From positions 62,001-126,000 of the IMG/VR virus record IMGVR_UViG_3300032214_000715: a DNA stretch of 64,000 nucleotides. One strand, written 5' to 3'. Positions 6,265 through 62,060 of the stretch are shown here, in pieces (position 1 is the stretch's first letter; the number at the start of each line of letters is the position of its first letter). The notes below the pieces were generated by a model that saw only the letters and a list, made by a program, of their open reading frames with translations, ran no database searches and was not told the DNA's origin. A program made the translations under genes and the position numbers.

Positions 6265-6531
6265 TTACAGGAAATCCTTACGATTGTGACGTTCACGAGC
6301 ACTGCTGGCGAAATCACTGATGTTGCCGCACTTGTCTTCCCAACGAAGCAGACTACGAGCAGTAAACCCAATGTTCAGCTTAGACTCACATGCCGCCTCT
6401 TGATTCACTACACCGTTCAGCAGAACACGAACATGATAACGACCATTGATATTACGAACAGTGACTTCATGCTCACACTCGCCTACTAGACATCGTTGAA
6501 TTTTAACGATTTGAGTATACTTGTCAGTCAC
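6265..6531 (-). CDS. Hypothetical early protein
   Basis: GTG start, AGGAG RBS, own promoter. Confidence 0.65.
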   Translation of the reverse strand: MTDKYTQIVKIQRCLVGECEHEVTVRNINGRYHVRVLLNGVVNQEAACESKLNIGFTARSLLRWEDKCGNISDFASSARERHNRKDFL

Positions 6532-6567
6532 GATTTGCTCCTTGTTTTCTAACTTGAATACAGTATA

Positions 6568-6789
6568 TCAGATACCCAATTTACTGTCAAAAAAGTCTTC
6601 TATGAATTTAGGATCACATCGTTGCTTAAATTCATTCCATAGAGATTGATTCAGTAACGACAGGCGCAAGCTTGTCAATATTCCATTACTTTCACGAAAT
6701 CTCTCAAAATCACTACGCCAACGAACAATATCGCCGTATAGATCAGCAACTTGCTCGGCGATTTCCAATGCTTGACTTAAGCGATTCAC
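6568..6789 (-). CDS. Hypothetical protein
   Basis: 73-aa ORF. Confidence 0.5.
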   Translation of the reverse strand: MNRLSQALEIAEQVADLYGDIVRWRSDFERFRESNGILTSLRLSLLNQSLWNEFKQRCDPKFIEDFFDSKLGI

Positions 6790-6812
6790 TATGAACTCTC
6801 AGTATATTGAAA

Positions 6813-6980
6813 TTACTTTACAATAGAAAGAATGATACGTGCTTGACTAATCAATTCTTCTCTAGTGCTATTTGACAGACTCATTTGAGAGAATTTCCAC
6901 CAATTTTGATTGATAATCTCAACTTGAGCCCCAGTAAAAGTCTCAGAGAAGAATTGAACAAGCCAGAGAGGAATATTCAT
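6813..6980 (-). CDS. Hypothetical protein (55 aa)
   Basis: MNIPLWLV..., after promoter 7008-7036. Confidence 0.5.
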   Translation of the reverse strand: MNIPLWLVQFFSETFTGAQVEIINQNWWKFSQMSLSNSTREELISQARIILSIVK

Positions 6981-7233
6981 AACAAGCCCCTTATCAACAA
7001 CAAATACAGTATATCACCAACTCAATTTATTGTCAAATTTTAGACCCACGTATCTATATTGTATCCAGACACTGAGTTGGAGCGAAATCGCTGATAGCCA
7101 TACAAGTGTATAGCCACAATTTTATATGGAGGGAATATATGAATCGGCTCTATTTCTTTAGGTTTTACATTAAAAATTGGCCAAGTATCACAATGTGGAA
7201 TTGGCCAACCCGTATTTTTAAGTTCTTTTACTA

Positions 7234-7542
7234 TCACGTATGCTCTACAAATTTGATATTGGTGGCATTTATAGCAGACTGACACACATTACAGGGACGA
7301 GCCAGAGCAGGATTACCGTTTCTATCATATCTAACAATTACGAGTTTGTGAGCCCTGCTCAAATCTTTACACTTGGTAATAGCGGAAATTTCCGCGTGTA
7401 AATATACCTTATGTTCTTCTCCCACTTTTATAGCGTGTTTTGCTTGAAGTGGGTGAGTTTTCACATAAGAATTTTGTCCCACAGACAAAACTCTACCGCG
7501 CTTATCATATATGATAGCAGTGATATTTTGCTTCTGCGTCAC
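7234..7542 (-). CDS. Zinc-dependent cytidine/dCMP deaminase-fold protein
   Basis: HAE...PCxxC. Confidence 0.8.
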   Translation of the reverse strand: MTQKQNITAIIYDKRGRVLSVGQNSYVKTHPLQAKHAIKVGEEHKVYLHAEISAITKCKDLSRAHKLVIVRYDRNGNPALARPCNVCQSAINATNIKFVEHT

Positions 7543-7548
7543 TGTATT

Positions 7549-7965
7549 TTAGCCAATTTCGTTTAGTGCGCGACGAAACAAAATTTCTTGCTTGGCAAAG
7601 GCTTGAATTTCCCAGGGACGATTTAGATAATCAGTGTTCTTAGAATATCGCTTACCAGCCCAGCATTGAGCTCCGCGAGTGCTGCCCTTTAGAATTCCCT
7701 TTGTCATCTGAGCTACGTGAACCATTTCGTGTGCCAACGTTATTCCGAGATTTACCGGTGACGCTTTGGAATTCAAGACTACGAAAAACATATTCTTTGC
7801 GCCGGAAATCGGGACCGTGATTCCAGCTTCCGAGCAATCTGCTTTAAGCGTAATCAAAATAGACCCAACATTTCGGTCTATCTTTAGTTGAGACAACAGA
7901 CTTGGCATAATTGCCTCAAGCAACTTGATTTTTTTGCTGGAACGTCCAGAGAATTCGTACTGCAT
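7549..7965 (-). CDS. Zincin-like metallopeptidase
   Basis: AHEMVH...PWEIQA; start taken downstream of the promoter. Confidence 0.65.
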   Translation of the reverse strand: MQYEFSGRSSKKIKLLEAIMPSLLSQLKIDRNVGSILITLKADCSEAGITVPISGAKNMFFVVLNSKASPVNLGITLAHEMVHVAQMTKGILKGSTRGAQCWAGKRYSKNTDYLNRPWEIQAFAKQEILFRRALNEIG

Positions 7966-31091: not shown

Positions 31092-32192
31092 TTATAAGTC
31101 AGGTAGCAAAACTTTATCAACAGTATCGGACATTACACCTATAATATAATTTGTGGATTCTGTTTCTTGTAGTGCTGCTTGCTTCTTGTTGATGTTGATA
31201 TGCTTTGTAAACCAAGGTATCGGAGTACTCTTGGGATGAGAGCCTTGATACTTGATACCAATATCCTTCAAGCGATTGAAGGCCGTCCAATCTACAAAGT
31301 CTTTAAGAATCTCAGCATTTAGACCAATAACTGGGCCCTTCTTGAACAGATAATCAGCCCACGCCTTTTCTTCTGCAATTACTTCTTCGTATAGTTGATA
31401 TACTTCTTGCTCACAAACAAGTGCCACTCTAGCAAAACGTGGATCATCTTTTACTACTTGATTGATGATCCAAGCAGTCCATTCTGTGTGTAATAGTTCA
31501 TCTTGTAGAATTAGACTAATGATGTTGCCATTGCCGATGTAGATTTTGTTTTCTACCATAGCAAGACTGGTGGCAAAACTTACCATGAAGCGAAATGCTT
31601 CTAGTGCGTAGCTGGCATGTAATGCCATCCATATTGCCATAATGTGCTTGTCTTCGTTCACCTCATATCCCAATTCTTTATTACAATTGAGTTGATGTAA
31701 TTGCTCGTAGTATCTACCAACACTACTAGCCATGTCAATGATTTCTTGCGTGTCATGAATGGTATTGAAAACATCTTTTGGTACACCATAAATGTTACGA
31801 ATGATGTGACTATAACTCTTACTGTGAATATTGGTTTCAAAAAATGACCAGTTATTAACCAGTGCCTCTAACTCTGGAATGCTAATTACTGGATTGAATA
31901 CTTGCGCTGGAGCGCGACCTTGAATACTGTCTAGTGCTGTTTGACGTAGTAAGTTACTAGTAAAAATATGTTTGATAGCTTCACTAGAGTCTTTATGATC
32001 AATTTTGTCTTTAGTCAGTGATACTTCTTCTGGGACCCAAAAAAATCCCCTTGCCGTATCTTCAAATTTTTGAATTTTTGGATACTTAACCTCTTCAAAT
32101 CTTTGAACGGTTACTGGCCCAGCTGGATCCAGAAACATTGTACGATTTAGATAGTTTGTTTTTGTTGATAGATTATATTGTAAGTTACTCAT
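31092..32192 (-). CDS. nrdB: Ribonucleotide reductase class Ia beta subunit
   Basis: FFWVPEE, ETNIHSKSY, LEAFRF and DELLH motifs. Confidence 0.95.
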   Translation of the reverse strand: MSNLQYNLSTKTNYLNRTMFLDPAGPVTVQRFEEVKYPKIQKFEDTARGFFWVPEEVSLTKDKIDHKDSSEAIKHIFTSNLLRQTALDSIQGRAPAQVFNPVISIPELEALVNNWSFFETNIHSKSYSHIIRNIYGVPKDVFNTIHDTQEIIDMASSVGRYYEQLHQLNCNKELGYEVNEDKHIMAIWMALHASYALEAFRFMVSFATSLAMVENKIYIGNGNIISLILQDELLHTEWTAWIINQVVKDDPRFARVALVCEQEVYQLYEEVIAEEKAWADYLFKKGPVIGLNAEILKDFVDWTAFNRLKDIGIKYQGSHPKSTPIPWFTKHININKKQAALQETESTNYIIGVMSDTVDKVLLPDL

Positions 32193-32201
32193 ATGTTTCC
32201 C

Positions 32202-32807
32202 TCATAATTTCTTACTTGCTAACACGATCTGACAAATATGTTCCAAACGTTCCACATGTTCAAAAGCACGCCACGGACTAGTATCAACCGCAACCACTCC
32301 ATGACGATCAATCCCTACAATATGATTGTCTACAAACCCATTACTCTTCAAGCCCAACGCAGGTATAGTAGCATCTGCTAATTTCTGACTGATGGGCGGA
32401 ACGTCTGTAACATTTGAGCCTACCCTTGTATATCTGCCCAATTCTGGGAATTCTTTAACCAATTCATTTAACTTTATACCAGCGTACATAGCAGCCACTG
32501 TGTAGGTGGGATGTAGATGTAATACTATTCTGACCTCTGTGTCAGTGTGCTTTTGAAGCCCGTAATGTAATGGAATTTCTCCTGACGGTTTTAACGCACT
32601 ACTTAGATCAGTGTAGGGTAGTGCTCTATTTTCGGATATACTCCATTTTATAAACATTTCTGGCTGTAGCGTTTGCTTTCTAATACCACTTGGCGTGATG
32701 TACATATGATCACGATCATGCCAACGAATGCTGGCATTGCCATCTCTGGCAGTAATCCAGTTTCGCTTATATGCTTCTACAAATATTTCGCTAATAGTTT
32801 CTAACAT
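32202..32807 (-). CDS. Class II aldolase/adducin family protein
   Basis: DGNAS, ITPSG, PSGEIPLH, HLH and HG motifs. Confidence 0.88.
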   Translation of the reverse strand: MLETISEIFVEAYKRNWITARDGNASIRWHDRDHMYITPSGIRKQTLQPEMFIKWSISENRALPYTDLSSALKPSGEIPLHYGLQKHTDTEVRIVLHLHPTYTVAAMYAGIKLNELVKEFPELGRYTRVGSNVTDVPPISQKLADATIPALGLKSNGFVDNHIVGIDRHGVVAVDTSPWRAFEHVERLEHICQIVLASKKL

Positions 32808-32816
32808 AATTCTTTC

Positions 32817-34652
32817 TTAAAGTTTGCATGCGATGCAATCCGCATCTTCCTCTTCAACCGGAGGAGTAAATTGTATGACATTCTCTGTCTTGTCTGCCAG
32901 AGCGGCTTTTGCGCCCATCTTGTTGATCAAGCTGTAGTACAGACTCTTACCGCCCCAATGATTGTACAACATTAAGTTCTTAGCAATCAAGGTAGCTGGT
33001 ATCTTGCCGCCTTCAAAATGAGCCGGATTATAGAATGTGTTTGTACTGATACTTTGATCCACGTATGCTGCCAATACTGCTGCTGTTTTTAGATAGTCTA
33101 CACAATCGGTTTGGTCCCACATTAGTTGATAGCGATTCTTTAGACGCTTATAGTCAGGCACTACTTGAACAAATGACCCCGCTTTACTTTCTTTGACACT
33201 GATCAATTCCATTGGCAACTCAATCCCGTTAGTACTGTTCAACACTACTGAACTACTTTCTACCGGAGCGATAGCCATTAATGTGGCGTTACGAATGCCA
33301 CTCTTGAGTAGTCGTGCGCGTAGTGATTCCCAATCTAGCGATGGTGTGAAGTCTGTCAACTCATTGACACCCACTGCGCGGCGCTCCCATGGGAATACAC
33401 CCTTACCATACCACGTATGTTCACTGCGACCACAACTGCCACGTTCCTCCGCCAGTTCAATGCTGGCCTCAGTGAGATAATATGCTTGATGCTCCATCCA
33501 ACGCTTGACTTCAGCAAGTGCTTCTGGTGAACCATACTTCAGACCCCGCTTGGCATGCCAGTATGCTAGATTAGTAATTCCTATGCCTAGCGGTTCAAAA
33601 TCACTGTTAGCTAGTTTACTCTGTACACTCAGGAAATCTTGATAACTCAGTAGACTGCTCAGACTACGAACCAGTGTGCGACAACTCTTACGCATGTCTT
33701 GTGGATTACGGAACGCGCCCCAGTTCTGGCTGCCCAGTGTACATAACGAGATACGCCCATTTTCATCTTCTAGTCTCTGAAATGGTTTTGTTGGAAGAAG
33801 AATCTCAGCACATAGATTTGACATATAAATTGGATCAACCTCTGTGTCAAATGATCCTTGATTGATAACATTGTCAATGTTGACCATATAGATACGACCA
33901 GTGTCTGTGCGCTCTTTTAGTATTCCGTTCTTGAAGATTTCTTCTGCTGATAACACTTTACGTTTCTTTGTAGCATCAGCCTCATACTTAACATAGAGTT
34001 CTTCAAATCGCTGTGTGTTACGATAGTATGCTTCGTACAGGTCTGGCACCTCATGCGGATCAAATAGGGTAATGTTTTCACTGTTCTTATATCTGCGCCA
34101 GAATAACTTGCTAACTACAACACCATAGTCTAACTGTCGGACACGCGTTTCTTCTGTGCCTTGGTTGTTCTTGAGTACAATAAAGTCTTCGAACTGGTAG
34201 TGCCAAATAGGTAGATACACAGTGCAGCTAGCATTCCGAATGCCGCCCTGGCTATTGTGCGTCAATACCATAGGACCATTTTCACAATCGGATGCGAAAA
34301 AAGTATGCTCATCTTCTACTGTTATATCTATATAATTAGTAGAATTTTTTTGGCCCACATCACATGCAAGCAATCTTGTAAAACCATGCTCAGTCAAAAT
34401 TCTATCATTAATAGTCAACTCTTTTGGCTTCTTTTGAGAAAAACCATTTTCCCATACCATAAAAGGATGATTTGTCGAACAATTAATTACCGTACCATTT
34501 TCCAATTCAACCCTCACCTGGTCATGTTCTGGAACAATAGTATTCCATTTATCAGTTACTGTTTTAAAAACGATGTTTCTATTTTCGTCCAGTGTTTTGA
34601 TTTTCATGCCTACTTGGAGGTCTTTTATTTGAATTTTTTTAGTAATCGCCAT
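32817..34652 (-). CDS. nrdA: NrdA C-terminal fragment fused to the C-part of a split intein
   Basis: 133-aa IntC ending THN, then SQGGIR; SNLCAE, LCTL and C-terminal CIAC. Confidence 0.92.
   Translation of the reverse strand: MAITKKIQIKDLQVGMKIKTLDENRNIVFKTVTDKWNTIVPEHDQVRVELENGTVINCSTNHPFMVWENGFSQKKPKELTINDRILTEHGFTRLLACDVGQKNSTNYIDITVEDEHTFFASDCENGPMVLTHNSQGGIRNASCTVYLPIWHYQFEDFIVLKNNQGTEETRVRQLDYGVVVSKLFWRRYKNSENITLFDPHEVPDLYEAYYRNTQRFEELYVKYEADATKKRKVLSAEEIFKNGILKERTDTGRIYMVNIDNVINQGSFDTEVDPIYMSNLCAEILLPTKPFQRLEDENGRISLCTLGSQNWGAFRNPQDMRKSCRTLVRSLSSLLSYQDFLSVQSKLANSDFEPLGIGITNLAYWHAKRGLKYGSPEALAEVKRWMEHQAYYLTEASIELAEERGSCGRSEHTWYGKGVFPWERRAVGVNELTDFTPSLDWESLRARLLKSGIRNATLMAIAPVESSSVVLNSTNGIELPMELISVKESKAGSFVQVVPDYKRLKNRYQLMWDQTDCVDYLKTAAVLAAYVDQSISTNTFYNPAHFEGGKIPATLIAKNLMLYNHWGGKSLYYSLINKMGAKAALADKTENVIQFTPPVEEEDADCIACKL
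34254..34652 (-). mobile_element. Split intein C-fragment (133 aa)
   Basis: IKDLQVG, CSTNHPF, YIDITV...HTFF and THN/S. Confidence 0.9.
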
Positions 34653-35739
34653 TTTGATGTTGTTCCTTTGTTATCACTTTAATGTCTGGAAATTTTTTTG
34701 ACATATCATGTTGCTTTGCTTTTAATACTGTTTTGCCATTTCTGGTTTTTCTATAATAGATATCCAATAAGTTCTTTGATTTAAAGAATAAATCATCAAC
34801 TATGTAGAAACACTTGGTGGATAAGTTTGCGTAACTTTCGCTATTGGCATAATACTCTTCTGATGAAATTTGCATATTTTTTCTGTGTAGTAATGAATAT
34901 ACCGCAATTCGCTCTTCATTGGGATGTTTGTAAATCGTTGAATCATACTCATCTTTGGATATCATCCGCTTTTCGCCTGTTCTTCTATCAATGGCTTTAA
35001 ATTCACCATGTGTTACTCCCACGTACTCGCTGTCCTCTTTGTAAAATTCTGAAGCATCAACTATAGAAATTTCGCCAGTCTTTTTATTCTTGGCCGAAAC
35101 TTTGCCCGTAGTAATACCAATATATCTCTCGTTTGAATAGAACTCGTCTTTTGGTATTCTTTTGGATTTCCCGGTTATGCTATCAATGCACATCACATAA
35201 TCTTTGAATTCAGTGGTGTGAAGCATGGGATCATAGTCAACGACTTTAATTTTTTTAATTTCTCCTGACTCGGTTCTTATGTTCATCATACCGCTTGATA
35301 TATGTTTGTGATTTCCAGTTGAATATTCTTCAACCGAAACTCTATAAATTGTACCATCATCCGATCTACATAAAGTAGAACCAGCTCCGCAGTTAGTACC
35401 GCCAGCATTTATCACATTGTAAAATAATGGGTTTTTGCCAACATTAAATTTTTCGTGATACGCCTTTTCTGCATCAAAAGCGTCTGCTCTCGTAGAGAAG
35501 TATTCTACATAAATTTTAAATAATTCTGGATTGGTTTTCATTCGATCAACAAAATCAACAACAGTTGAACTAGAAAAATATCTAGAAAGTAAATCATGGG
35601 CATTAGTGCCCTCAACGCCCCTAGATCCAGAATAATATTTACCGTGTATTGTATCATACACTGTATAACAATAATAAATCGAATTTAGCAACATGTTTGT
35701 TTTTTGTCCGCCGTATGTTTCATATAGATATTTTGTCAT
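34639..35739 (-). CDS. Free-standing GIY-YIG-like homing endonuclease between the nrdA halves
   Basis: YCYTV...YYSGSR, YFSSS, E, FYN and repeated C-terminal modules; start at MTKY after the GAGGGAG RBS. Confidence 0.75.
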   Translation of the reverse strand: MTKYLYETYGGQKTNMLLNSIYYCYTVYDTIHGKYYSGSRGVEGTNAHDLLSRYFSSSTVVDFVDRMKTNPELFKIYVEYFSTRADAFDAEKAYHEKFNVGKNPLFYNVINAGGTNCGAGSTLCRSDDGTIYRVSVEEYSTGNHKHISSGMMNIRTESGEIKKIKVVDYDPMLHTTEFKDYVMCIDSITGKSKRIPKDEFYSNERYIGITTGKVSAKNKKTGEISIVDASEFYKEDSEYVGVTHGEFKAIDRRTGEKRMISKDEYDSTIYKHPNEERIAVYSLLHRKNMQISSEEYYANSESYANLSTKCFYIVDDLFFKSKNLLDIYYRKTRNGKTVLKAKQHDMSKKFPDIKVITKEQHQNGDY

Positions 35740-35778
35740 TTCGTACTCCCTCATAGTTATTTATGAAGGGGTACGAAA
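35739..35778 (-). promoter_or_regulatory. RBS-sequestering hairpin containing a late-promoter-like ATAAATA
   Basis: TTTCGTACCCCTTCATA-AATAAC-TATGAGGGAGTACGAAA. Confidence 0.7.
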
Positions 35779-35783
35779 AACAC

Positions 35784-36737
35784 TCAGATATCGTTGTTTT
35801 TTTTATCTTCTTCGACTAAAACTTCGACCCACGTATCTGGAGTAACACAACAACTACGTAGATCGCCGTACCACTTCTTTAGGAACGGAATCAATCCAGT
35901 GTGCTTTATTTCACCGTTACGAATTGGTGCGCCGACTGGACGAATTCGTCCAATTTCCAATCCGATGCCAGCACGTTTACTAGCATACTTTGCCATCATT
36001 TCACCAGCCGCGAAAATGCTGTCGAGAGTATCGTCTGCGCTAATAAGTACACAACTACTAAACTGCTTAGTAGTAGTGCCAAGACCAGCCAACACAGGTG
36101 TAGCCAGTGTAAAGTGCCCTTCACTAGCACATTCATAATATTCTTTAACATATTTCAATCTTTTTTCTTTTGGTTCCGAGTGAAATGCGGTTGCGGCGGC
36201 GATAGCGTATCGTACTTGCGGAGTTTCGTAGATTTGACCCGTGCTACGATTTTGAACAAGATATTTTTCGCATAGTTGAGCAATTGCCGCATATGTATAC
36301 TTTTCATCTTTACTATGATCAATGAATAGATCAATGATATTCCATTCATCTTGAGTGTACCAATCAAGCAATTCAGGAGTGTATAGTCCCGCTTCTACAT
36401 TTCGTTTAACTATATCATATAGTTTTGGAGGATCATAGTCGTTATACACTTCTTTACGCAACATGCTTACACGCTGTCTGCCGGCCACATATTGATAATT
36501 TACGTTGTTGATTTCTGGATTTTCAGTCTCGTCAATCAAATCCACCATTGCGTTTAATAGCAATTGATCAATTGTTGATGTTTTGATCCCGTCGTGAAAT
36601 TGAATCTGCGCACGTATTTCAATCATACTGGCACTTACACCATCTACCCCGCGACAGGCATGCGCTACTTGTCGTTGAATTTTGGAAATGTCCAACGGAA
36701 CTCTAGCTCCGTCTCGCTTGATAACGTGTATAGTCAT
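35784..36737 (-). CDS. nrdA: NrdA N-terminal fragment (ATP cone) fused to a 21-aa split intein N-part
   Basis: VIKRDG, ATPVLAG, FSSCVL; ...LRSC followed by CVTPDTWVEV. Confidence 0.92.
   Translation of the reverse strand: MTIHVIKRDGARVPLDISKIQRQVAHACRGVDGVSASMIEIRAQIQFHDGIKTSTIDQLLLNAMVDLIDETENPEINNVNYQYVAGRQRVSMLRKEVYNDYDPPKLYDIVKRNVEAGLYTPELLDWYTQDEWNIIDLFIDHSKDEKYTYAAIAQLCEKYLVQNRSTGQIYETPQVRYAIAAATAFHSEPKEKRLKYVKEYYECASEGHFTLATPVLAGLGTTTKQFSSCVLISADDTLDSIFAAGEMMAKYASKRAGIGLEIGRIRPVGAPIRNGEIKHTGLIPFLKKWYGDLRSCCVTPDTWVEVLVEEDKKNNDI
35787..35849 (-). mobile_element. Split intein N-fragment (21 aa)
   Basis: Block A CVTPDTWVEV followed by a short charged tail and stop. Confidence 0.85.
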
Positions 36738-36866
36738 ATTATTTTATCCTAATAATTATGTAACATTTTATACTTATAAAAGTGCTATGTCAATTTATTT
36801 GAGTAAACATTGTGCTCCGAAACTGAACGTACAATTTCGTATTACAGTGCGAATGTTATAGCTTAT

Positions 36867-38477
36867 TTATGTAACTCTAATGCTCAGACTAGTTTTAGTT
36901 TTAACGCTAGCAAAACACGTATTGGTATTGTTATAGGGAGTAACCCCTACAGCGTAAAATCCAGTTTTAGTGGGGGTTCCAGTAATAGTTACTCTTATAG
37001 ATGGTGGTAAATTTGAAGAAGTCGGAATAGCAGTTACTGTAGCAGTGAGTCCACTAGAGATTAAACGTGTTGTGTCTAAATCAGCCGTGGTTGCGTTTCT
37101 TATATTTACTATTGTATTAAGCGGTACATTGACTCGCGCTTGTATAAGCGTGGCGGACGTATATTGGGGGGCGGGGCAATCGGGTGGAGCTACAACTCCG
37201 CTTCCGGCACTTACATTTGTAACGTTGGCTACTGCTCCTCCGTTTCCTAGATTATTAGTAGCATTGACTAGCACATTCCAAGCCTGATTCGTAGTAGTTG
37301 GAGTTCCAGTTATTGTTAGCACATAATCAGTTGCTTTAATCTTGCTTTTTGCGCCACTAAACGTCATAGTAGAGGGCAGACCAGACGCTATAGTAGCGCT
37401 AGTGGCATTTTGTATAGTGATAGTTCCGGTATAGGGATAGTTTCTTTGAAACACCGAGTTTGTATCACTTTGAGTTTTGCTGTTCTTTGATATTTGTCCT
37501 ACCACTGGGTTTGGAGCCGGAGCGGGCAATACAGTGCCAGCACCCGCTGATTTAGTAGTACTAACAGAGGTACAAGTGGTTAGCGCATTAGTGGCTACAA
37601 TGTTAACATTGTAGCTATTAGAACTTGACAGTCGTGGCATTCCACTAATCGTAAGCAAATAATTAAACCCACTTTTTACTCCAGAATGCGTTATTCCTGA
37701 TGGCCAAGTTGTAGTTCCGGATGAACTTAATACTGGAGTGGCGTTAGTGGCATTTTCAATAATTAAAGTTTCCGAGTACGGAACTCCAACAGTAAAACTG
37801 TTGGTCTGTAAGTTTGGAATAACAGGGGCGATACAACTAACGGGAGTAACCTTACCAGTGTTGATAGATACGTCATCTGTGGCAAAGCCCCCTAGATACT
37901 GCTCCAAACAGCCTGTTCCAGTATTAGTGGCCCTTACTTTGATATTGTAGGATTGATTTCCAGTAGTTGGAACTCCAGCTATTAAAAACGTATAATTTCC
38001 AGAGATGGCAGATTGTGACTGAACCTCAATGCCAGTTGGAAGTCCACTTATAGCTGCGCTAGTAGCATTATTAATTGTAATGCTACTACTAAATTGAGTT
38101 CCAACTGTAAAGACCAGAGTTTTTGTAATAGTTCCAATAGTTGGTCTAGTACATGATGGATAATTAACTGATATACTTCCTGTCCTAGTTGAGCTACATA
38201 AACTAACACTACTTATCGTACAGCCTCGTGGGAAATTACAAGCACTTCCCGTCCAAGTGAAACTACTAGGATTTGCCGGGGCAACTCCAGTGAGCATGTA
38301 CCCCGTTTGCGCGGTCCATTCGAATTTAGCACCAGGAAGAGTAGTATTAAACTGAATTTGAGTTGAAGGGTTAGCTACTACAGGTATACTATATGGCTGA
38401 CCCGGAGTTAGCGGGCCGACTAGTCTAAGACTAACTTGGCCGGCACGAATACAAGGATTATTATTAGAGATAATCAT
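36867..38477 (-). CDS. Ig-like (He_PIG-type) repeat protein, about 5 domains
   Basis: LPxG...GTPT repeats. Confidence 0.75.
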   Translation of the reverse strand: MIISNNNPCIRAGQVSLRLVGPLTPGQPYSIPVVANPSTQIQFNTTLPGAKFEWTAQTGYMLTGVAPANPSSFTWTGSACNFPRGCTISSVSLCSSTRTGSISVNYPSCTRPTIGTITKTLVFTVGTQFSSSITINNATSAAISGLPTGIEVQSQSAISGNYTFLIAGVPTTGNQSYNIKVRATNTGTGCLEQYLGGFATDDVSINTGKVTPVSCIAPVIPNLQTNSFTVGVPYSETLIIENATNATPVLSSSGTTTWPSGITHSGVKSGFNYLLTISGMPRLSSSNSYNVNIVATNALTTCTSVSTTKSAGAGTVLPAPAPNPVVGQISKNSKTQSDTNSVFQRNYPYTGTITIQNATSATIASGLPSTMTFSGAKSKIKATDYVLTITGTPTTTNQAWNVLVNATNNLGNGGAVANVTNVSAGSGVVAPPDCPAPQYTSATLIQARVNVPLNTIVNIRNATTADLDTTRLISSGLTATVTAIPTSSNLPPSIRVTITGTPTKTGFYAVGVTPYNNTNTCFASVKTKTSLSIRVT

Positions 38478-38497
38478 TAGTTTCCTATAAATGTTAT

Positions 38498-41400
38498 TTA
38501 TGCGCCACCAACTTTACCACTTCCGGCTGGAGCTTCTTCCACAATTGCTGTAGTACAAGTGCTACTAAAGTTACTTGCTTTTACTATTAACGAATATGAC
38601 TGTCCGCTGACGGTGGGAGTTCCAGTTAAGGTGATAACATAATTATTGCCTGATTTTGCGCCTGTAGCTTTTATTCCACTAGGGAGTCTATTCTTTAAAA
38701 ATACAAATGACGCTAAGGTGGCATTTGTTACCGTTATACTTCCGTTATATGGAACTCCTTTTACAAACACGTTCGGCGCGACAGTTCCTACTACGGGCGT
38801 AGTACACGCAGGCTGTTTTGCTACAACTCCTGCTCCTACACTGAATTCTGTTATTTGTGCTGCGGCTTTTCCTCCGCCACAAGCATTGGTAGCATTCACA
38901 GTTGCGCCCCACGGTTGATCCTCTGTTGTAGGAGTTCCGCTGAGAGTTAGAACATAATTAGCTCCACTTGGAGCCCCAGTTACTGTTATTCCAGTTGGCA
39001 GTCCGCTTATGGTAGCCACTGTTGCTTTGCTTACGGTTATAGTTACGGGACCGTAAGCCACATTTCGCTGAAAAGCTGACTGCGTTGTAGTCATTTTTGA
39101 CACAGACGGAGTATCACATACTGGGGCAGAGGCAACGATACCGTTTCCTATCTTAACGTCTTTTATTTCTGTGGTGGTTTTTCCACTGCCACAGGCGTTA
39201 GTAGCACTAACTGTAGCACTCCATACTTCAGCAGCATCGGTAGGTGTGCCGCTGATTGTAATTACATAATTACCAGCATTAACAGCTCCAGTCTGCGTGA
39301 TTCCTTTAGGAAGACCAGTGATTGTAGCTGCGGTCGCTTTGCTTACTGTTAGCGTTGCGGGGCCGTATGCTACATTCTTTTGAAACTGAGTGGATGTTAA
39401 CTGGGCAGCAATCGGAGTATCACATTCTGGTGCCGCCGCAACTGTTCCACTTCCAATTTGTATGTCTGATACTTCAGCATCGTCATTTCCGCCTTCACAA
39501 ACATTGGCGGCGCTAGCTTTAATTGTCCAAGAACCAGCAGTAGTTGGAGTGCCACTGATTGTGAGTACATAATTAGAACCGCTAATTGCCCCAGTGGCAG
39601 TAATTCCAGCCGGCATTCCACTTAGTGTGGCAATGGTTGCGTTAGCTATAGTTAGCGTTGTTGTTGTATATGCTACGTTTCTTTGAAATACTGTGTTAGA
39701 CAGTAACGGAATATCTGGAGCAGCGCAGCGCGGTGCCCCGAGTACAGTTCCACTAGCGATTTGTTTATTCAAAAGTTGACCAACAATTCCTCCGCACTCA
39801 TTCTTGGCGCTGATTATAATTGAGTATGTACCCACTGTTGTAGGAGTACCACTCAACGTGTAAGTAACACTTGAAGAAGTAGACGTGACGGTTCCATTAA
39901 TCCCCGGCAATCCATTTATTGTTATTGAAGCGTCCCCGTCCGTTACCGGAGAAATTAATATAGTTACTGGACCGTATGGCACGTTCTTTTGAAATTGTGT
40001 TTGAGCCAGAGTGGTTGTTACTGTTGGAGTGTCACATTGTGGCGCTGCTGCCACTGTTCCATTTCCAATTGATATGTCTTTTACTTCAGCGGTTGTTTTT
40101 CCTTCGCCGCAAGCGTTGGCCGCACTAACCTTTGCCGCCCAAGTACCAGCAGTAGTTGGAGTGCCACTGATTGTGAATACATAATTAGCTCCACTGATTG
40201 CTCCCTCGGCAGTAATGCCAGCTGGTAATCCGGTAACTGTAGCAGTGGTGGCGTTAGTGATGGTTAGAGTTGTTGGTCCATAAGCAGTGCTAACTTGTAG
40301 TGCGGTAGACTGTAGTGTTGGCACCGTTGGAGCAACGCAGAGAGGGGCATCCAAAACTACTCCACTGGAAACCTCAAAATTGTTGATAACCGTTTTTAAT
40401 TTACCAGAGCCGCAATCATTTGTAGCAGTGACTAATATCTTCCAACTTTGCGCTGCGTCAGTTGGCGTGCCGCTGACAGTGAATACATAATTGAGTCCAC
40501 TAACAGCACCCACAGCAGTAACTCCACTGGGTAGCCCACTTAAAGTAGCAGTGGTGGCGTTGTTTATAGTTAGAGTTGTCGGACCATACGCTACATTCTT
40601 TTGAAAAATTGGAGTAGCAAACGCGCTTATTGTTGGGGTAGTACATAGTGGGGCTGGATCTACTTTTCCGCTGCCGGCATTCAAATTACTGACGACGGAA
40701 GTAGTTTTTCCTCCACCACAAGCATTTTCTGCTGCTATCACCATAGCGTATACTTGTCCACTAGTAGTGGGAGTTCCACTTAAGTTAATAACATAGTCAG
40801 CTCCATCAACCGCTCCAGTTTGATTTATACCAGTCGGAATAGTTCCTGTTAATGTTGCTTTTGTGGCATTTTTAACTGTGATTTTTCCCGTATACGCTAT
40901 TTGTTCCACGAACGTATTTGGATCTACTAATATAACTAGTGGGCTAGTACAAATTGGAGCTGCGGTTACAGTTCCAGTTCCCACACTTGACCCTATTATT
41001 GAAGACTTGGTTTTTCCACCGCCGCAATCATTATCGGCACTTACTAATACTTCCCATTTTTGATCGGCAGTTGTAGGGGTACCGCTAACGGTAAATTTGT
41101 AATTGACTCCATCTTGTTGTCCAGTGGCTGCTACTCCAGTTGGAAGTCCACTAATAGTGGCGCCCGTGGCATTAGTGATCGTAATTGTGCCACTATACGC
41201 TACATTTCTTTGAAATGCGGTTGCTCCAAAAGTTAGTGATACACTTGGAACAACACAAAGTGGAGCCGCAGATACCGTACCAGTAAGAACAGTTCTTCTT
41301 GAGGTATTAGTACTACAAGTAGAACCACTATTGGTGGCATCCACTAGTATAGTATATGACTCTATGCTAATAGTAGGTGTACCCGATAACGTTAGTATGT

Positions 41401-44400
41401 AATTAGCTCCGTTAGCAGCACCCGTACTGGTAATACCAGTTGGGAGCCCAGTTATAGTAGCGCTAGTAGCATTAGTTATCGTAACAGACCCACTATAAGC
41501 AACGCTTTTTTGAAATTGAGTTGAACTCAGTGTTCCTATAGATGGAGCGGCACATGGTGGGGCTGCTGCCACTGTTCCTTTACCAATGGGAATATTAGTT
41601 ATCTCACTAGTAGTTTTTCCTCCACCACACGCATTAGTACCGCTTATTGTAGCAGCCCAGGTCTGTGATGCGACCGTAGGAGTTCCACTTAGTGTAAGAA
41701 CGTAACCATTGTCACTGGCCGCACCGGTTACGGTAATGCCAGTTGGAAGTCCGCTGATGGTGGCGATAGTTGCGTTAGGTATCGTTAACGTCGCAGAGTA
41801 TGCTACCGCTGCTTGAAAATTTGTAGAAGAAAGTTGTGAAACAGTTGGTTTAGTACATAGCGGAGCTGGTCGTACTGTTCCGGAACCAGCCGCTAATGTA
41901 GCCGTGGAAGTAGTTTTCCCACCACCACAAGCATTAGTAGCACTTACAGATGCTGTCCACGCCTCTTCTGTTGTAGGAGTTCCGCTGAGTGTTAGTACAT
42001 AATTAGCTCCGCTGACTGCGCCTGTACTAGTAACTCCAGTTGGAAGTCCAGTTATAGTAGCGCTAGTTGCGTTTGATACAGTGATTGTCTCACCAGTCGC
42101 TACATTTTTTTGAAACACTGCTGTCCCTAAACTTGTAGTAGTAGGGGTTGTACAAGCTGGTGGAGGAGCTACTGTCCCAGATCCCAAATAATTATTAGGG
42201 AAAGACAGACTGCTTGACGAATCAACGCAGTTTTTCCCCGAATTTATTGCTTGAATTTTTATGTCGTATGCTTGACCGCTTACCGTAGGAGTTCCACTAA
42301 TAGTGAATACATAGCTGGTTCCACTAGCTGCGCCAGTAGCTGTTATTCCAGTTGGTAGTCCAGTTATAGTAGCTGTAGTTGTGTTTTGTAAACCAATGTA
42401 ACTTGTAAACGCAACGTTGGCTTGAAACTTAAAGACGGTGTAAGTAGATAATGCTGAACTGGAGCAACCAAATCCTGGGGCGGTTCTAGAAACACCTGTT
42501 GATATCGCTTGATCGTTCAGGAAAATAGCATTATCTGGAAAACTGTAGACTTCTACACCGGTGTAGGTCTCCGCAGCGCGACATATCCCAAATTTAGCTG
42601 GAGCGTTGATAGTCATCAATATAGGACCAAATTTTTGATAGGGTAACGTTGGGGTTCCTTGAATACTGAATGCTATATGTTCAGGATAACTAGAATTAGC
42701 TGGCGCCGGACTGATGGTTATTCCCGTTGGTAGCATAGGTATTCCGGCTGCGACACTTGCGGAGCTAGTACTAAATATAGCAGACTCGCCATTAATGTAA
42801 AAAGTATGATTGTACTCAAATTTTTCTCTAAACATTGGCAGCGGGGTGGGCTGAGATTTAATGGGGACACAGGGCGATAAATTAGTCACAGTTCCGCTAC
42901 CAGCACTGATATTGGCAACCGATGATGAAAATTCTTTATCAGCGAGATTATTTTCAGCACTCACCGCTATATTATAGGGTTGACTAGTGGAGGTAGGAGT
43001 TCCACTAAGTGTAAAAATATAATCGCTGCCACTTGCCGCACCTACAGCAGTTATTCCAGCAGGAAGCCCGCTTATAGTAGCACTAGTAGCATTGGTGACT
43101 TTAACAGTTCCTGTATATTTGGTCTCAATTTTAAAAGAATTAGAAGAAATGAAGCCGACCGATGGTTTGGGACTAGTTCGTTCCGCTAACGATTTAGTAA
43201 CAGTACCAGTTCCCGCACTTACGTTAACCAGATTTCTAGGCGGTTCCTGAGTACAAAACTGAGAGGAAGCATTAACTTTAATATCGTATACTTGACCCCC
43301 TTTATTCGGTGTACCAGATAACGTTAGAAGATAATCACGCCCAAATGCCTGACCAGTTACAGTAATTCCACTAGGTAAATTGGCTAAATTTTCTTTTGCT
43401 ATGCCTGCCGTTTGAGCCTGTTTAACAGTAATGCTTCCAGTATACGCAACACCAGAGGCAAAAGCATTTGGACTTACTGTTTGTACATCTGGATCTATAC
43501 ATTTAATATATCCAGTGGCAATTTGAATGGCAGTCGCAGTATTAGTAAAACAAGTGCTACCAGTATTAGTTGCGTCAAATCTAATGTTATACGTGGCTCC
43601 AGGGGGTCCAGAAGCAGTTCCACTAATTGTTATGCGATATCCAGTTCCGAACGGTGTTGAACTTGTTGCTGTAATTCCAATTGGAAGACCATATATTTTT
43701 GGAGCAGAGGTACAGTTGAATACGTCTATCGTGCCTGTATAAGCATCAAATATTCTAAAGTTATTTTCACTTGTAAGAGTCGCAGTTGGTAGTACGCACG
43801 AATCGTACTGAACTGTACCGCTACCCGCTGAGCCACTAATAGTATTAGTTTCAACCCCAGAAACTTCGTTAGTAGCAGTGACTGTAGCTGCCCACGACTC
43901 TCCACCGACTGTGGGTTTTCCAGTAATAGTGAATATGTAACTTGTGCCGCTTCTAACTCCGGTAGCAGTTATTCCAGCTGGGAGTCCAGTTATAGTAGCG
44001 CTAGTAGCATTAGATATCGTCAATGTACTATTGTAGTTAAAATTTGCCTGAAATATAGAGTTGATTTTATCTGGTTGTGATAGTGAGTTAGTCGCTATTT
44101 TTCTTATAGTGGGCGCGGTTGCTTTTTCTTTATTCACAGTCCCAGTTGCCACAGATGTTAATCCGGTACTTGCTTGACCGCATCCACCAGGATTATTAAT
44201 GGCGTTTATTTTAAAATCAAATATTTGTCCACTAGTAGTTGGAGTTCCAAGAAATCTAGCTGTAAAAGTAGTGCCAACTTTTGAGTTGGAACTGTATACA
44301 ACACCAGTTGGTAGTCCAGTAACTGTAATGCCAGTGGCATTTTCTATAGTAACATTTCCAGTGTAATACACACCTTTTTGAAATGTAGTATTATCAAGTG

Positions 44401-45034
44401 TTCCAATTGTTGGAGTGGTACATGGAGTTAGTCCTACCTTGCCCGACACCACTAACGTTGGAGACATACCAGAGGCAGCACATCCGCCTGGGCTATTCCC
44501 GCCAGTTACTGAAATATTGTATGACTGATTAACAGTTGGAGTTCCAGATAGAGTCCAAACATAATTACTTCCGCTTGTCGCTCCAGTTCTATTAATACCA
44601 GTAGGCAGCCCTGAAATTCCACTACTAGTGGCGTTATTTATGGTGATTGTTCCATTAAATGCTTGTCCTAGTATAAAATTTAGCGGAGGACTAACTGTTC
44701 CAATTGATGGAGTCGCGCATGCTGGCGCTCCTACCGTGCCCGAAACTGTTGTTCCTATTTTTCTGTTACACCCAACAGCATCAGCGTTGGTGGCTTCAAA
44801 ATACATTTTGTATTTTTCACCAGAGGTAGTGGGAGTTCCAGCTAATGATATACTTGATCCACTAGTTTGTCTAGTGACTCCAGATACACTTATTCCCGAT
44901 GGCAGCCCTGTCACTGTTATACTAGTCGCGTTACTGAAATAATATGAGCCGGACATATATACGCCCTGTCGCATATTGGTAAATACTCCAGGAACAGTAG
45001 TAGCTGGTGCTGGGTTAACGCATGGAAATGGCAT
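38498..45034 (-). CDS. Giant Ig-like repeat protein, about 21 domains
   Basis: About 100-aa repeats GLPTGI...LSGTPT...N-C. Confidence 0.8.
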   Translation of the reverse strand: MPFPCVNPAPATTVPGVFTNMRQGVYMSGSYYFSNATSITVTGLPSGISVSGVTRQTSGSSISLAGTPTTSGEKYKMYFEATNADAVGCNRKIGTTVSGTVGAPACATPSIGTVSPPLNFILGQAFNGTITINNATSSGISGLPTGINRTGATSGSNYVWTLSGTPTVNQSYNISVTGGNSPGGCAASGMSPTLVVSGKVGLTPCTTPTIGTLDNTTFQKGVYYTGNVTIENATGITVTGLPTGVVYSSNSKVGTTFTARFLGTPTTSGQIFDFKINAINNPGGCGQASTGLTSVATGTVNKEKATAPTIRKIATNSLSQPDKINSIFQANFNYNSTLTISNATSATITGLPAGITATGVRSGTSYIFTITGKPTVGGESWAATVTATNEVSGVETNTISGSAGSGTVQYDSCVLPTATLTSENNFRIFDAYTGTIDVFNCTSAPKIYGLPIGITATSSTPFGTGYRITISGTASGPPGATYNIRFDATNTGSTCFTNTATAIQIATGYIKCIDPDVQTVSPNAFASGVAYTGSITVKQAQTAGIAKENLANLPSGITVTGQAFGRDYLLTLSGTPNKGGQVYDIKVNASSQFCTQEPPRNLVNVSAGTGTVTKSLAERTSPKPSVGFISSNSFKIETKYTGTVKVTNATSATISGLPAGITAVGAASGSDYIFTLSGTPTSTSQPYNIAVSAENNLADKEFSSSVANISAGSGTVTNLSPCVPIKSQPTPLPMFREKFEYNHTFYINGESAIFSTSSASVAAGIPMLPTGITISPAPANSSYPEHIAFSIQGTPTLPYQKFGPILMTINAPAKFGICRAAETYTGVEVYSFPDNAIFLNDQAISTGVSRTAPGFGCSSSALSTYTVFKFQANVAFTSYIGLQNTTTATITGLPTGITATGAASGTSYVFTISGTPTVSGQAYDIKIQAINSGKNCVDSSSSLSFPNNYLGSGTVAPPPACTTPTTTSLGTAVFQKNVATGETITVSNATSATITGLPTGVTSTGAVSGANYVLTLSGTPTTEEAWTASVSATNACGGGKTTSTATLAAGSGTVRPAPLCTKPTVSQLSSTNFQAAVAYSATLTIPNATIATISGLPTGITVTGAASDNGYVLTLSGTPTVASQTWAATISGTNACGGGKTTSEITNIPIGKGTVAAAPPCAAPSIGTLSSTQFQKSVAYSGSVTITNATSATITGLPTGITSTGAANGANYILTLSGTPTISIESYTILVDATNSGSTCSTNTSRRTVLTGTVSAAPLCVVPSVSLTFGATAFQRNVAYSGTITITNATGATISGLPTGVAATGQQDGVNYKFTVSGTPTTADQKWEVLVSADNDCGGGKTKSSIIGSSVGTGTVTAAPICTSPLVILVDPNTFVEQIAYTGKITVKNATKATLTGTIPTGINQTGAVDGADYVINLSGTPTTSGQVYAMVIAAENACGGGKTTSVVSNLNAGSGKVDPAPLCTTPTISAFATPIFQKNVAYGPTTLTINNATTATLSGLPSGVTAVGAVSGLNYVFTVSGTPTDAAQSWKILVTATNDCGSGKLKTVINNFEVSSGVVLDAPLCVAPTVPTLQSTALQVSTAYGPTTLTITNATTATVTGLPAGITAEGAISGANYVFTISGTPTTAGTWAAKVSAANACGEGKTTAEVKDISIGNGTVAAAPQCDTPTVTTTLAQTQFQKNVPYGPVTILISPVTDGDASITINGLPGINGTVTSTSSSVTYTLSGTPTTVGTYSIIISAKNECGGIVGQLLNKQIASGTVLGAPRCAAPDIPLLSNTVFQRNVAYTTTTLTIANATIATLSGMPAGITATGAISGSNYVLTISGTPTTAGSWTIKASAANVCEGGNDDAEVSDIQIGSGTVAAAPECDTPIAAQLTSTQFQKNVAYGPATLTVSKATAATITGLPKGITQTGAVNAGNYVITISGTPTDAAEVWSATVSATNACGSGKTTTEIKDVKIGNGIVASAPVCDTPSVSKMTTTQSAFQRNVAYGPVTITVSKATVATISGLPTGITVTGAPSGANYVLTLSGTPTTEDQPWGATVNATNACGGGKAAAQITEFSVGAGVVAKQPACTTPVVGTVAPNVFVKGVPYNGSITVTNATLASFVFLKNRLPSGIKATGAKSGNNYVITLTGTPTVSGQSYSLIVKASNFSSTCTTAIVEEAPAGSGKVGGA

Positions 45035-58778: not shown

Positions 58779-58907
58779 ATTATTTTCCTTTATCTAAATA
58801 ATTACTGTGATTATAGAATTTCTTTTATCACTAAATTTATTTATGATAAATTTCAAAAAAACGCTACTTAAAAACTCTTCGCAAAGAGTTGATATCTAAA
58901 TATAGAT

Positions 58908-61622: not shown

Positions 61623-62060
61623 TTAGTTAGCTACAATACGATTTACTCTTACGTAAGTAGCATCAAAAATATCGGTCTTAACCACGCCGTAATCGTTCGC
61701 TTCATGACGAACGATATAATCGTTAGCGGTGGTGTAGTAGAGATTCTGTGGACCACTGCCCCAGTTAACTACTACATGCCCGTCGTGATCGGCTAGTTTA
61801 GCTAGCTTGACGATCTTTACTGGACGACATTCTCCATTACCCAAGTCTTCTTTTGTATTCTTAAAAGTTTCTGGGCTCACGATCCAACGTTCGTTCTTAA
61901 CTCCAGTAAGAATATAATCACCTACACCATACGGCACTGGATTTGGATTTTCAAGCGATACTAATGTTCCAGCTTCAGTTGCGATTTCATATCGCTCAAC
62001 ACGATCTTGCCTTTTATAACACTCAAAAGAATTTGAGTCAAACCACGATTCATCAATCAT
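61623..62060 (-). CDS. Hypothetical protein (PGDYG-like)
   Basis: SLE...GDYILTG...ERW...F; two-repeat layout. Confidence 0.7.
   Translation of the reverse strand: MIDESWFDSNSFECYKRQDRVERYEIATEAGTLVSLENPNPVPYGVGDYILTGVKNERWIVSPETFKNTKEDLGNGECRPVKIVKLAKLADHDGHVVVNWGSGPQNLYYTTANDYIVRHEANDYGVVKTDIFDATYVRVNRIVAN

Follow-up and report, generated by a model that had tools for sequence, protein, structure and literature searches.

The closest described counterparts of the locus reported here are fractured genes and atypically split inteins. In the fractured genes of Dassa 2009 (gp41-1, NrdJ-1, IMPDH-1 and NrdA-1 to NrdA-7), the parts follow one another on one strand as the host N-part with the N-terminal intein half (IntN), a spacer of 27-51 nucleotides (nt), an endonuclease gene, and the C-terminal intein half (IntC) with the host C-part, accompanied by hairpins and overlapping frames (PMC2677866). 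The natural atypical splits given in papers of 2023-2026 are AceL-TerL, GOS-TerL, VidaL and PolB16 (n = 5; record IntN of 15 residues); natural short IntN segments range from 15 to 37 residues, and the S1 split of VidaL and PolB16 lies “immediately following beta-strand 2” (PMC13014065). The DNA analysed here, referred to as the window, is a stretch of 64,000 nt (positions 62,001 to 126,000 of IMG/VR virus record IMGVR_UViG_3300032214_000715), which carries at 32817-36737, on its minus strand, a fractured nrdA gene for a class Ia ribonucleotide reductase (RNR). From sequence comparison and structural modelling, it is considered highly probable that this gene harbours a class 1 split intein between the residues equivalent to E. 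coli NrdA C292 and S293, that the intein was broken by a GIY-YIG homing endonuclease gene, and that the protein halves are rejoined by trans-splicing. The C292-S293 position lies in specificity loop 2.

The window shares with the genes of Dassa 2009 the one-strand order of the parts, the hairpin at the 5' end of the endonuclease gene, overlapping frames, an endonuclease assigned to the GIY-YIG type and opposite charges on the intein halves (PMC2677866). In contrast, those inteins are broken at the canonical endonuclease-insertion position, with a long IntN and a short IntC (PMC2677866), and their NrdA site adjoins the thiyl-radical cysteine, whereas that of the window lies in loop 2; relatives of the window also carry the thiyl-site element. 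The new aspects are the NrdA loop-2 host site and the sequence family, the two kinds to which the locus belongs, the fractured gene and the S1 atypically split intein, being already known. The parts of the locus are as follows.

36737..35784, minus strand: nrdA-N open reading frame (ORF) of 317 residues (296 N-extein + 21 IntN), from the ORF list
35850..36737, minus strand: nrdA N-extein, 296 codons, with the ATP-cone, the all-alpha domain, the barrel start, FSSC (E. coli C225) and the end LRSC (E. coli C292); Pfam, and E = 1.7e-81 against E. coli R1
35787..35849, minus strand: IntN, 21 codons, CVTPDTWVEVLVEEDKKNNDI, with the stop codon at 35784-35786; from the ORF, the core being nearly invariant among loci
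35727..35792, minus strand: RNA hairpin covering the 29-nt spacer and the first codons of the endonuclease gene; folding z-score and covariation
34639..35754, minus strand: putative free-standing homing endonuclease gene, ORF of 371 residues, likely start at the second ATG (35739); family at the same site in 10 loci
34639..34652, minus strand: 14-nt overlap in which the endonuclease gene ends and IntC begins, ATGGCGATTACTAA; ORF coordinates
34254..34652, minus strand: IntC, 133 codons, with the Lys-rich head MAITKKIQIKDL, block B CSTNHP, block F YIDITVEDEHTFFAS and block G LTHN; alignment, model of a relative, and a ratio of non-synonymous to synonymous differences (pN/pS) of 0.25
32817..34253, minus strand: nrdA C-extein, 478 codons plus stop, beginning with SQGGIR (E. 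coli S293) and holding SNLCAE (C439), LCTL (C462), the YY pair and the C-terminal CxxC; E ~1e-113 against E. coli R1

Three minus-strand ORFs make up the locus, namely 36737..35784 (317 residues), 35754..34639 (371 residues) and 34652..32817 (611 residues). The first (nrdA-N with IntN) and the third (IntC with nrdA-C) are predicted to yield separate proteins, each with its own start and stop, and the endonuclease gene lies between them. In Pfam, the first ORF matches the ATP-cone and all-alpha profiles and then ~60 positions at the beginning of the RNR barrel, and the third covers barrel profile positions 70-522, i.e., the remainder of the barrel. Since the nrdA-N protein aligns to E. coli R1 residues 6-293 and the C-extein to residues 293-744, the host protein is broken exactly between C292, where the N-extein ends, and S293, where the C-extein starts, with no residue lost or doubled. 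The preliminary description of this locus had reported that the first gene closes with LRSC followed by CVTPDTWVEVLVEEDKKNNDI and a stop codon, and that the C gene opens with 133 intein residues, whose end LTHN is followed by SQGGIR; both statements agree with the ORF list. Its further claim that the halves meet to give RSC-SQGGIR is borne out by the seamless E. coli alignment and by over 40 close relatives, up to 97% identical in the exteins, whose gene is uninterrupted and intein-less, with the last N-extein codon next to the first C-extein codon. The insertion is in frame, and its removal restores conserved host sequence, as judged by E. coli R1 as well as the intein-less relatives. The catalytic cysteines are divided just as had been described, with C225 (FSSC) in the first chain and C439 (SNLCAE) and C462 (LCTL) in the second, and all catalytic NrdA residues are intact across the two chains. 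Comparison with empty alleles gave no clear signal of a co-conversion tract around the insertion site.

The 21 residues of IntN and 133 residues of IntC together form a class 1 mini-intein of 154 residues, with Cys1 in IntN, S59-x-x-H62, D109/H116/F118 and T131-H132-N133 in IntC, and Ser at position +1. Cys1, the block B S-x-x-H, the block F D/H, the terminal THN and the +1 nucleophile (Ser, or Cys in one sub-type) are invariant down to 45% identity, and the splicing residues of IntC are likewise invariant among 14 aligned sequences. The fold was modelled on a natural contiguous relative (L032), which is ~69% identical to the window in IntC. The resulting model (predicted local distance difference test, pLDDT, 92.5; predicted template modelling score, pTM, 0.86) displays the HINT horseshoe fold, and Foldseek matched it at probability 1.00 to >50 intein/HINT chains, with template modelling (TM) scores of 0.65-0.78 to solved inteins; the matches include NrdJ-1, gp41-1, Aes123 PolB1, Npu DnaE and VidaL 6vgv, all at <=21% identity.

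In the L032 model, a strand at residues 7-11 is followed by a loop (12-19) and a strand (20-24), and the break of the window maps into this loop; the IntN core CVTPDTWVEVL corresponds to strands 1-2, followed by an acidic tail. On this model, the 21-residue IntN fits the S1 atypically split class, with the break in the loop after strand 2, in line with the atypical split proposed at the outset. The acidic IntN and Lys-rich IntC start noted at that stage also hold, with net charges of -4 for IntN and +4 for the first 20 residues of IntC; this complementarity is kept in 19 loci (IntN -3 to -8, IntC head +4 to +7). VidaL (IntN of 16 residues) and PolB16 OarG (15 residues) have the same break after strand 2, as compared by strand order in the L032 model, and share with the window an IntN short enough for peptide synthesis, a long and folded IntC, and a phage or metagenome source; VidaL 6vgv matches the L032 model in HINT fold at probability 1.00 and 14% sequence identity. 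They differ from the window in sequence family, host gene and site (the window intein being <=21% identical to any solved intein), in the nucleophiles (Cys1/Ser+1 in the window, Ser1/Ser+1 in PolB16) and in IntN length, which is predicted to be 21 residues in the window and 12-25 in its relatives. Similarly, AceL-TerL (25 residues) and GOS-TerL (37 residues) combine a short IntN with a long IntC in phage-like metagenomic genes, whereas their break lies after the first helix (S2) and their host is the terminase large subunit (PMC13014065).

An endonuclease gene between the halves had been proposed earlier, and the middle gene is accepted here, from sequence comparison, as a free-standing homing endonuclease whose N-terminal ~100 residues constitute a divergent GIY-YIG domain. 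The assignment is made because transitive homology, motif register, the sole structural match and look-alikes identified with ESM point the same way. The 371-residue protein belongs to a family with 42-58% identity found at the same site in 10 loci, and an exhaustive profile search with this family returned 1761 cluster representatives. Distant members (profile positions 24-120; relatives at E 1e-18 to 1e-38) match PF01541 GIY-YIG (E = 2e-4) and PF19835 SegE_GIY-YIG (E = 4.5e-4), just under the cut-offs, and others carry NUMOD3 and I-TevI DNA-binding modules. The N-domain alignment shows Y-x-Y...Y-x-G followed by Arg, Glu and Asn, with Y8/Y10, Y21-G23, E76 and N93 invariant and R25 nearly so. 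The corresponding residues of I-TevI are Y6, Y17, R27, E75 and N90, and the Arg, Glu and Asn of the family stand at I-TevI-like spacing. All look-alikes identified with ESM belong to GIY-YIG or NUMOD clusters (score 0.94, 179 shared features). In the predicted structure, the C-terminal ~250 residues comprise ~7 repeated beta-hairpin/helix modules, and this part of the protein is presumed to bind DNA. Direct search of the 371-residue protein in Pfam, NCBIfam and PHROG gave nothing significant, the whole family profile found no meaningful match in the PDB, and Foldseek matches of the full model were weak and not significant.

The hairpin at 35727..35792 has a folding energy of -25.2 kcal/mol (z = -5.76; none of 200 shuffles was as stable) and is conserved in ten loci, where 5 of its 22 pairs show compensatory changes. 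It sequesters the Shine-Dalgarno sequence GAGGGAG together with the second ATG (35739), and on this ground the endonuclease probably starts at that ATG. The hairpin loop contains the invariant CATAAATAA (35757-35765), which occurs five times in the window (1.55 expected; five reached in 1/100 shuffles), always on the minus strand: at 35757-35765, 36863-36871, 38494-38502, 44634-44642 and 58837-58845. Of these copies, one precedes the tail sheath gene by 59 nt and another stands 17 nt before the gene for a structural-looking repeat protein of 536 residues, and CATAAATAA may be inferred to be a candidate late-promoter motif of this phage; the exact T4 late promoter TATAAATA is not enriched. For T4 I-TevI and Aeh1 mobE, late-promoter transcripts escape the hairpin and get translated. 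At its other end, the endonuclease gene shares 14 nt, its stop codon included, with the beginning of IntC.

These features are consistent with the following course of events. An endonuclease gene would have landed in the loop after intein strand 2, cutting the intein ORF in two. The hairpin would limit endonuclease translation from read-through transcripts, while initiation at the late promoter-like CATAAATAA in the loop would give transcripts devoid of the 5' arm, and hence a translatable endonuclease mRNA. At the protein level, the 21-residue IntN may dock into the 133-residue IntC, aided by its Lys-rich head, and complete the HINT fold. Cys1 would then form a thioester, attack by Ser+1 would give a branched ester, cyclisation of the terminal Asn would release the intein, and an O-to-N shift would create a native C292-S293 peptide bond in a 774-residue NrdA in which C225, C439 and C462 share a single chain. 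The endonuclease, in turn, could spread the element by cutting alleles lacking it.

Relatives were sought with IntC plus 67 extein residues as the query, yielding 6009 cluster representatives (a count inflated by extein-only matches). Among the best 120 of these, nearly all start with M-x-K-T-K-K-I-Q-I-K-D-L, the beginning of IntC. The same split is present in ~19 distinct diverged viral contigs, in which stop positions differ after the conserved IntN core and the Met start of IntC is conserved; IntN lengths in the metagenome relatives are 14-25 residues (14 in L063). Only five cultured phages were found to carry the intein: contiguous in Thanatos-1/2 and SUMAE/VPALA, present in a Campylobacter phage, and split in KARL-1. 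The inteins of Shewanella phages Thanatos-1/2 and Vibrio phages SUMAE/VPALA are homologous (41-50% identity to IntC) and occupy the same loop-2 position; unlike that of the window, they are neither split nor accompanied by an endonuclease. In Acinetobacter phage KARL-1 (L003:1219-4938; MH713599.1 40953-44672), nrdA is fractured, the N gene ends in HS followed by CLTPDTKVEILV and a stop codon (a predicted IntN of 12 residues), and a DUF7487 protein lies between the halves; the record is annotated with two NrdA fragments and a hypothetical protein only. Insertion sites differ by one residue within the family, as seen on comparing L003, L002 and L063 with positions 35847-35852 and 34251-34256 of the window. 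KARL-1, Thanatos and L063 read S/C...HN/C-SQGG (+1 Cys; slashes mark the junctions), one residue upstream of the SC/C...HN/S-QGG (+1 Ser) of the window and SUMAE; the predicted spliced product is identical for both sites and only the +1 nucleophile differs.

The break is occupied in the relatives by one of three endonuclease types (the GIY-YIG family, an HNH+NUMOD3 gene or DUF7487 proteins) or by none. In L029 (4766-4860) and L049 (86-180), the intein is split without an endonuclease, the halves lying in one frame with a single stop codon and 18 nt between them, an arrangement that looks like the scar of endonuclease loss; some contiguous forms retain an internal M-(A/V)-K-T-K-K. Although the IntC tree is poorly resolved overall, L005 (split) and P0110 (contiguous) are near-identical sisters with support 100/98, and its starred branches force at least 4 changes of state. 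Together with the varied occupants of the break, this leads to the conclusion that fracture, endonuclease swapping, loss and re-fusion took place repeatedly. A wider proposal is put forward tentatively, at slightly less than even confidence: that this is the largest natural S1-split family, apparently undescribed, with predicted IntN segments below the 15-residue record (12 in KARL-1, 14 in L063), that the loop between strands 2 and 3 is a second natural endonuclease landing site in the HINT fold, and that the family passes through cycles of fracture, replacement, loss and re-fusion.

Further insertions were seen in some relatives. In L040:752-5524, P0002, P0010, P0026, P0041 and P0042, nrdA is in at least three pieces or holds several inteins: a canonical split or contiguous intein at the SNL/C thiyl site, a further N-part at APVES/C, and a break before I(A/S)LCTLGS with a 235-residue GIY-YIG-like gene, where the tails are only partly intein-like (a 43-residue tail starting with SLTLDNGTEITL and a 14-residue head without His-Asn). 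L054-L057 (~6406-7868) and L064/L065 (~6394-6990) carry an extra insertion of ~1.46 kb or 0.6 kb a few residues past the first site, between IntC...SQGG and the remaining C-extein. In P0057 (residues ~341-365) and at the N-termini of P0084/P0085, the C-terminal end of the endonuclease (...DIEIITREEHENG...) is fused in frame to IntC; these fusions may be deletion products or gene-calling artefacts.

Several points weigh against the trans-splicing interpretation and its parts. The Pfam Intein_splicing, PT-HINT and Hint matches to IntC residues 6-133 are all below the gathering cut-offs. For the endonuclease, none of the lines leading to GIY-YIG is significant alone: the sole PDB matches of the N-domain profile, two I-TevI catalytic-domain entries, are weak (E = 0.49), the AlphaFold model is poor (pLDDT 64; order beta-beta-alpha-alpha-beta-alpha), and hhalign of the family with one putative GIY-YIG neighbour, itself without a Pfam match, was negative. 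The late-promoter idea depends on a single 9-mer with five occurrences against 1.55 expected. Moreover, viable phages such as KARL-1 are no proof of splicing, because nrdA can be dispensable for phages. Nevertheless, the locus is regarded as a real and probably functional system in which, on the evidence of sequence and model, trans-splicing is predicted.

The alternative that survives best follows the example of Aeromonas phage Aeh1, whose nrdA is split by mobE (Friedrich 2007; Crona 2011). As in the window, a free-standing endonuclease gene cuts nrdA within one operon and the catalytic cysteines lie on two chains; unlike the window, Aeh1 is described as having no intein, an HNH-type endonuclease, and fragments that stay separate and assemble via short tails. 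The NrdA fragments of the window might similarly assemble non-covalently, the intein halves being interaction tails that never splice: split NrdA of Aeh1 works without ligation and its tails aid assembly (PMC3045599), and the charged tails of IntN and IntC could play the same role. This is nonetheless judged improbable, as the residues needed only for splicing (Cys1, block B His, terminal His-Asn and the +1 nucleophile) are invariant over deep divergence, and a folded domain of 154 residues would stay lodged in specificity loop 2.

Selection across the ten loci bears on a second, very improbable alternative, in which nrdA is decaying and non-functional, broken by a selfish endonuclease in a phage that uses the host RNR. 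The intein-riddled nrdA of Campylobacter phages has been judged to be degenerating (PMC3653736), and up to three or four nrdA insertions occur in relatives of the window. However, purifying selection on the N- and C-exteins is strong (pN/pS 0.12-0.16; pN 0.09-0.14), all catalytic residues are retained and nrdB is next on the same strand. IntC (pN 0.18, pN/pS 0.25) and the endonuclease (pN 0.20, pN/pS 0.29) are also under purifying selection, since pN stays low at saturated synonymous sites (pS ~0.7).

The integrity of the sequence was assessed at the contig level. A contig that is probably the source spans 32800-36800 with no difference (word depth 39), and over 34261-35771 the contigs from an independent sediment run differ by one single-nucleotide polymorphism; no raw reads fell on the locus in the 12% sampled of two runs. 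A sequencing or assembly artefact, including the frame-joining error envisaged in the preliminary description, or an RNA-level event such as a group I intron that carries the endonuclease and restores a contiguous intein ORF, is scarcely credible: the exact sequence has contig support without raw-read coverage, but the split recurs in ~19 diverged loci with varied stop positions and a conserved IntC Met start, Rfam found no group I intron or other RNA family, and in L029 and L049 the IntC ATG follows the stop after only 18 nt, too short a gap for an intron.

Whether the allele is new had been left to a database search, and the answer is divided. A near-identity DNA search found no match to the locus among cultured phages, so the exact sequence is without a near match there; the element itself belongs to a large family already in public data, KARL-1 included. 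A literature search on NrdA together with split or atypical inteins brought up no account of the family (Burton 2020, Thiel 2014 and Neugebauer 2017 lay outside its scope). Protein semisynthesis and live-cell labelling call for split inteins with a synthesisable IntN, of which only about five natural ones had been counted up to 2026; the locus is an entry to a large unexploited natural family, with members in cultured phages, that could be mined or serve consensus design. Furthermore, the locus shows that fracture of an intein by a free-standing endonuclease need not occur at the canonical point, and split and contiguous forms interconvert; fracture and re-fusion take place inside the allosteric specificity loop of an essential enzyme of nucleotide metabolism.

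The neighbourhood of the fractured gene comprises the following features.

36765..36793, minus strand: sigma-70-like promoter candidate TTGACA-17-TAAAAT upstream of nrdA-N (11/12 match)
32202-32807, minus strand: class II aldolase-like gene, downstream (Pfam)
31092-32192, minus strand: nrdB, downstream (Pfam)

The promoter is a candidate only, because such sites are no commoner in the region than in shuffles. The class II aldolase/adducin-like gene (Pfam E = 3e-27) lies between nrdA-C and nrdB, unusual company for the RNR genes of a phage. Apart from these, the window encodes a 1166-residue tail sheath, a tail tube and giant repeat proteins. Viral contigs of 154 and 239 kb contain the same phage, as does a contig of 341 kb, and it was seen in sediment, freshwater and aquatic metagenomes; it is a large (jumbo-type) uncultured myovirus of freshwater or sediment. 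The nearest NrdA exteins of cultured phages, 54-60% identical, are those of Xanthomonas phages BUDD and X1, Ralstonia phage RSP15 and Stenotrophomonas phages. At 36867-45034 on the minus strand lie adjacent genes for giant proteins of 536 and 2178 residues, made of ~90-residue repeats with the signature ...NATSATI(T/S)GLPTGIT..G....Y.(L/F)T(L/I)SGTPT...; a PHROG search gave no match for either, and they are probably virion fibre or decoration proteins.

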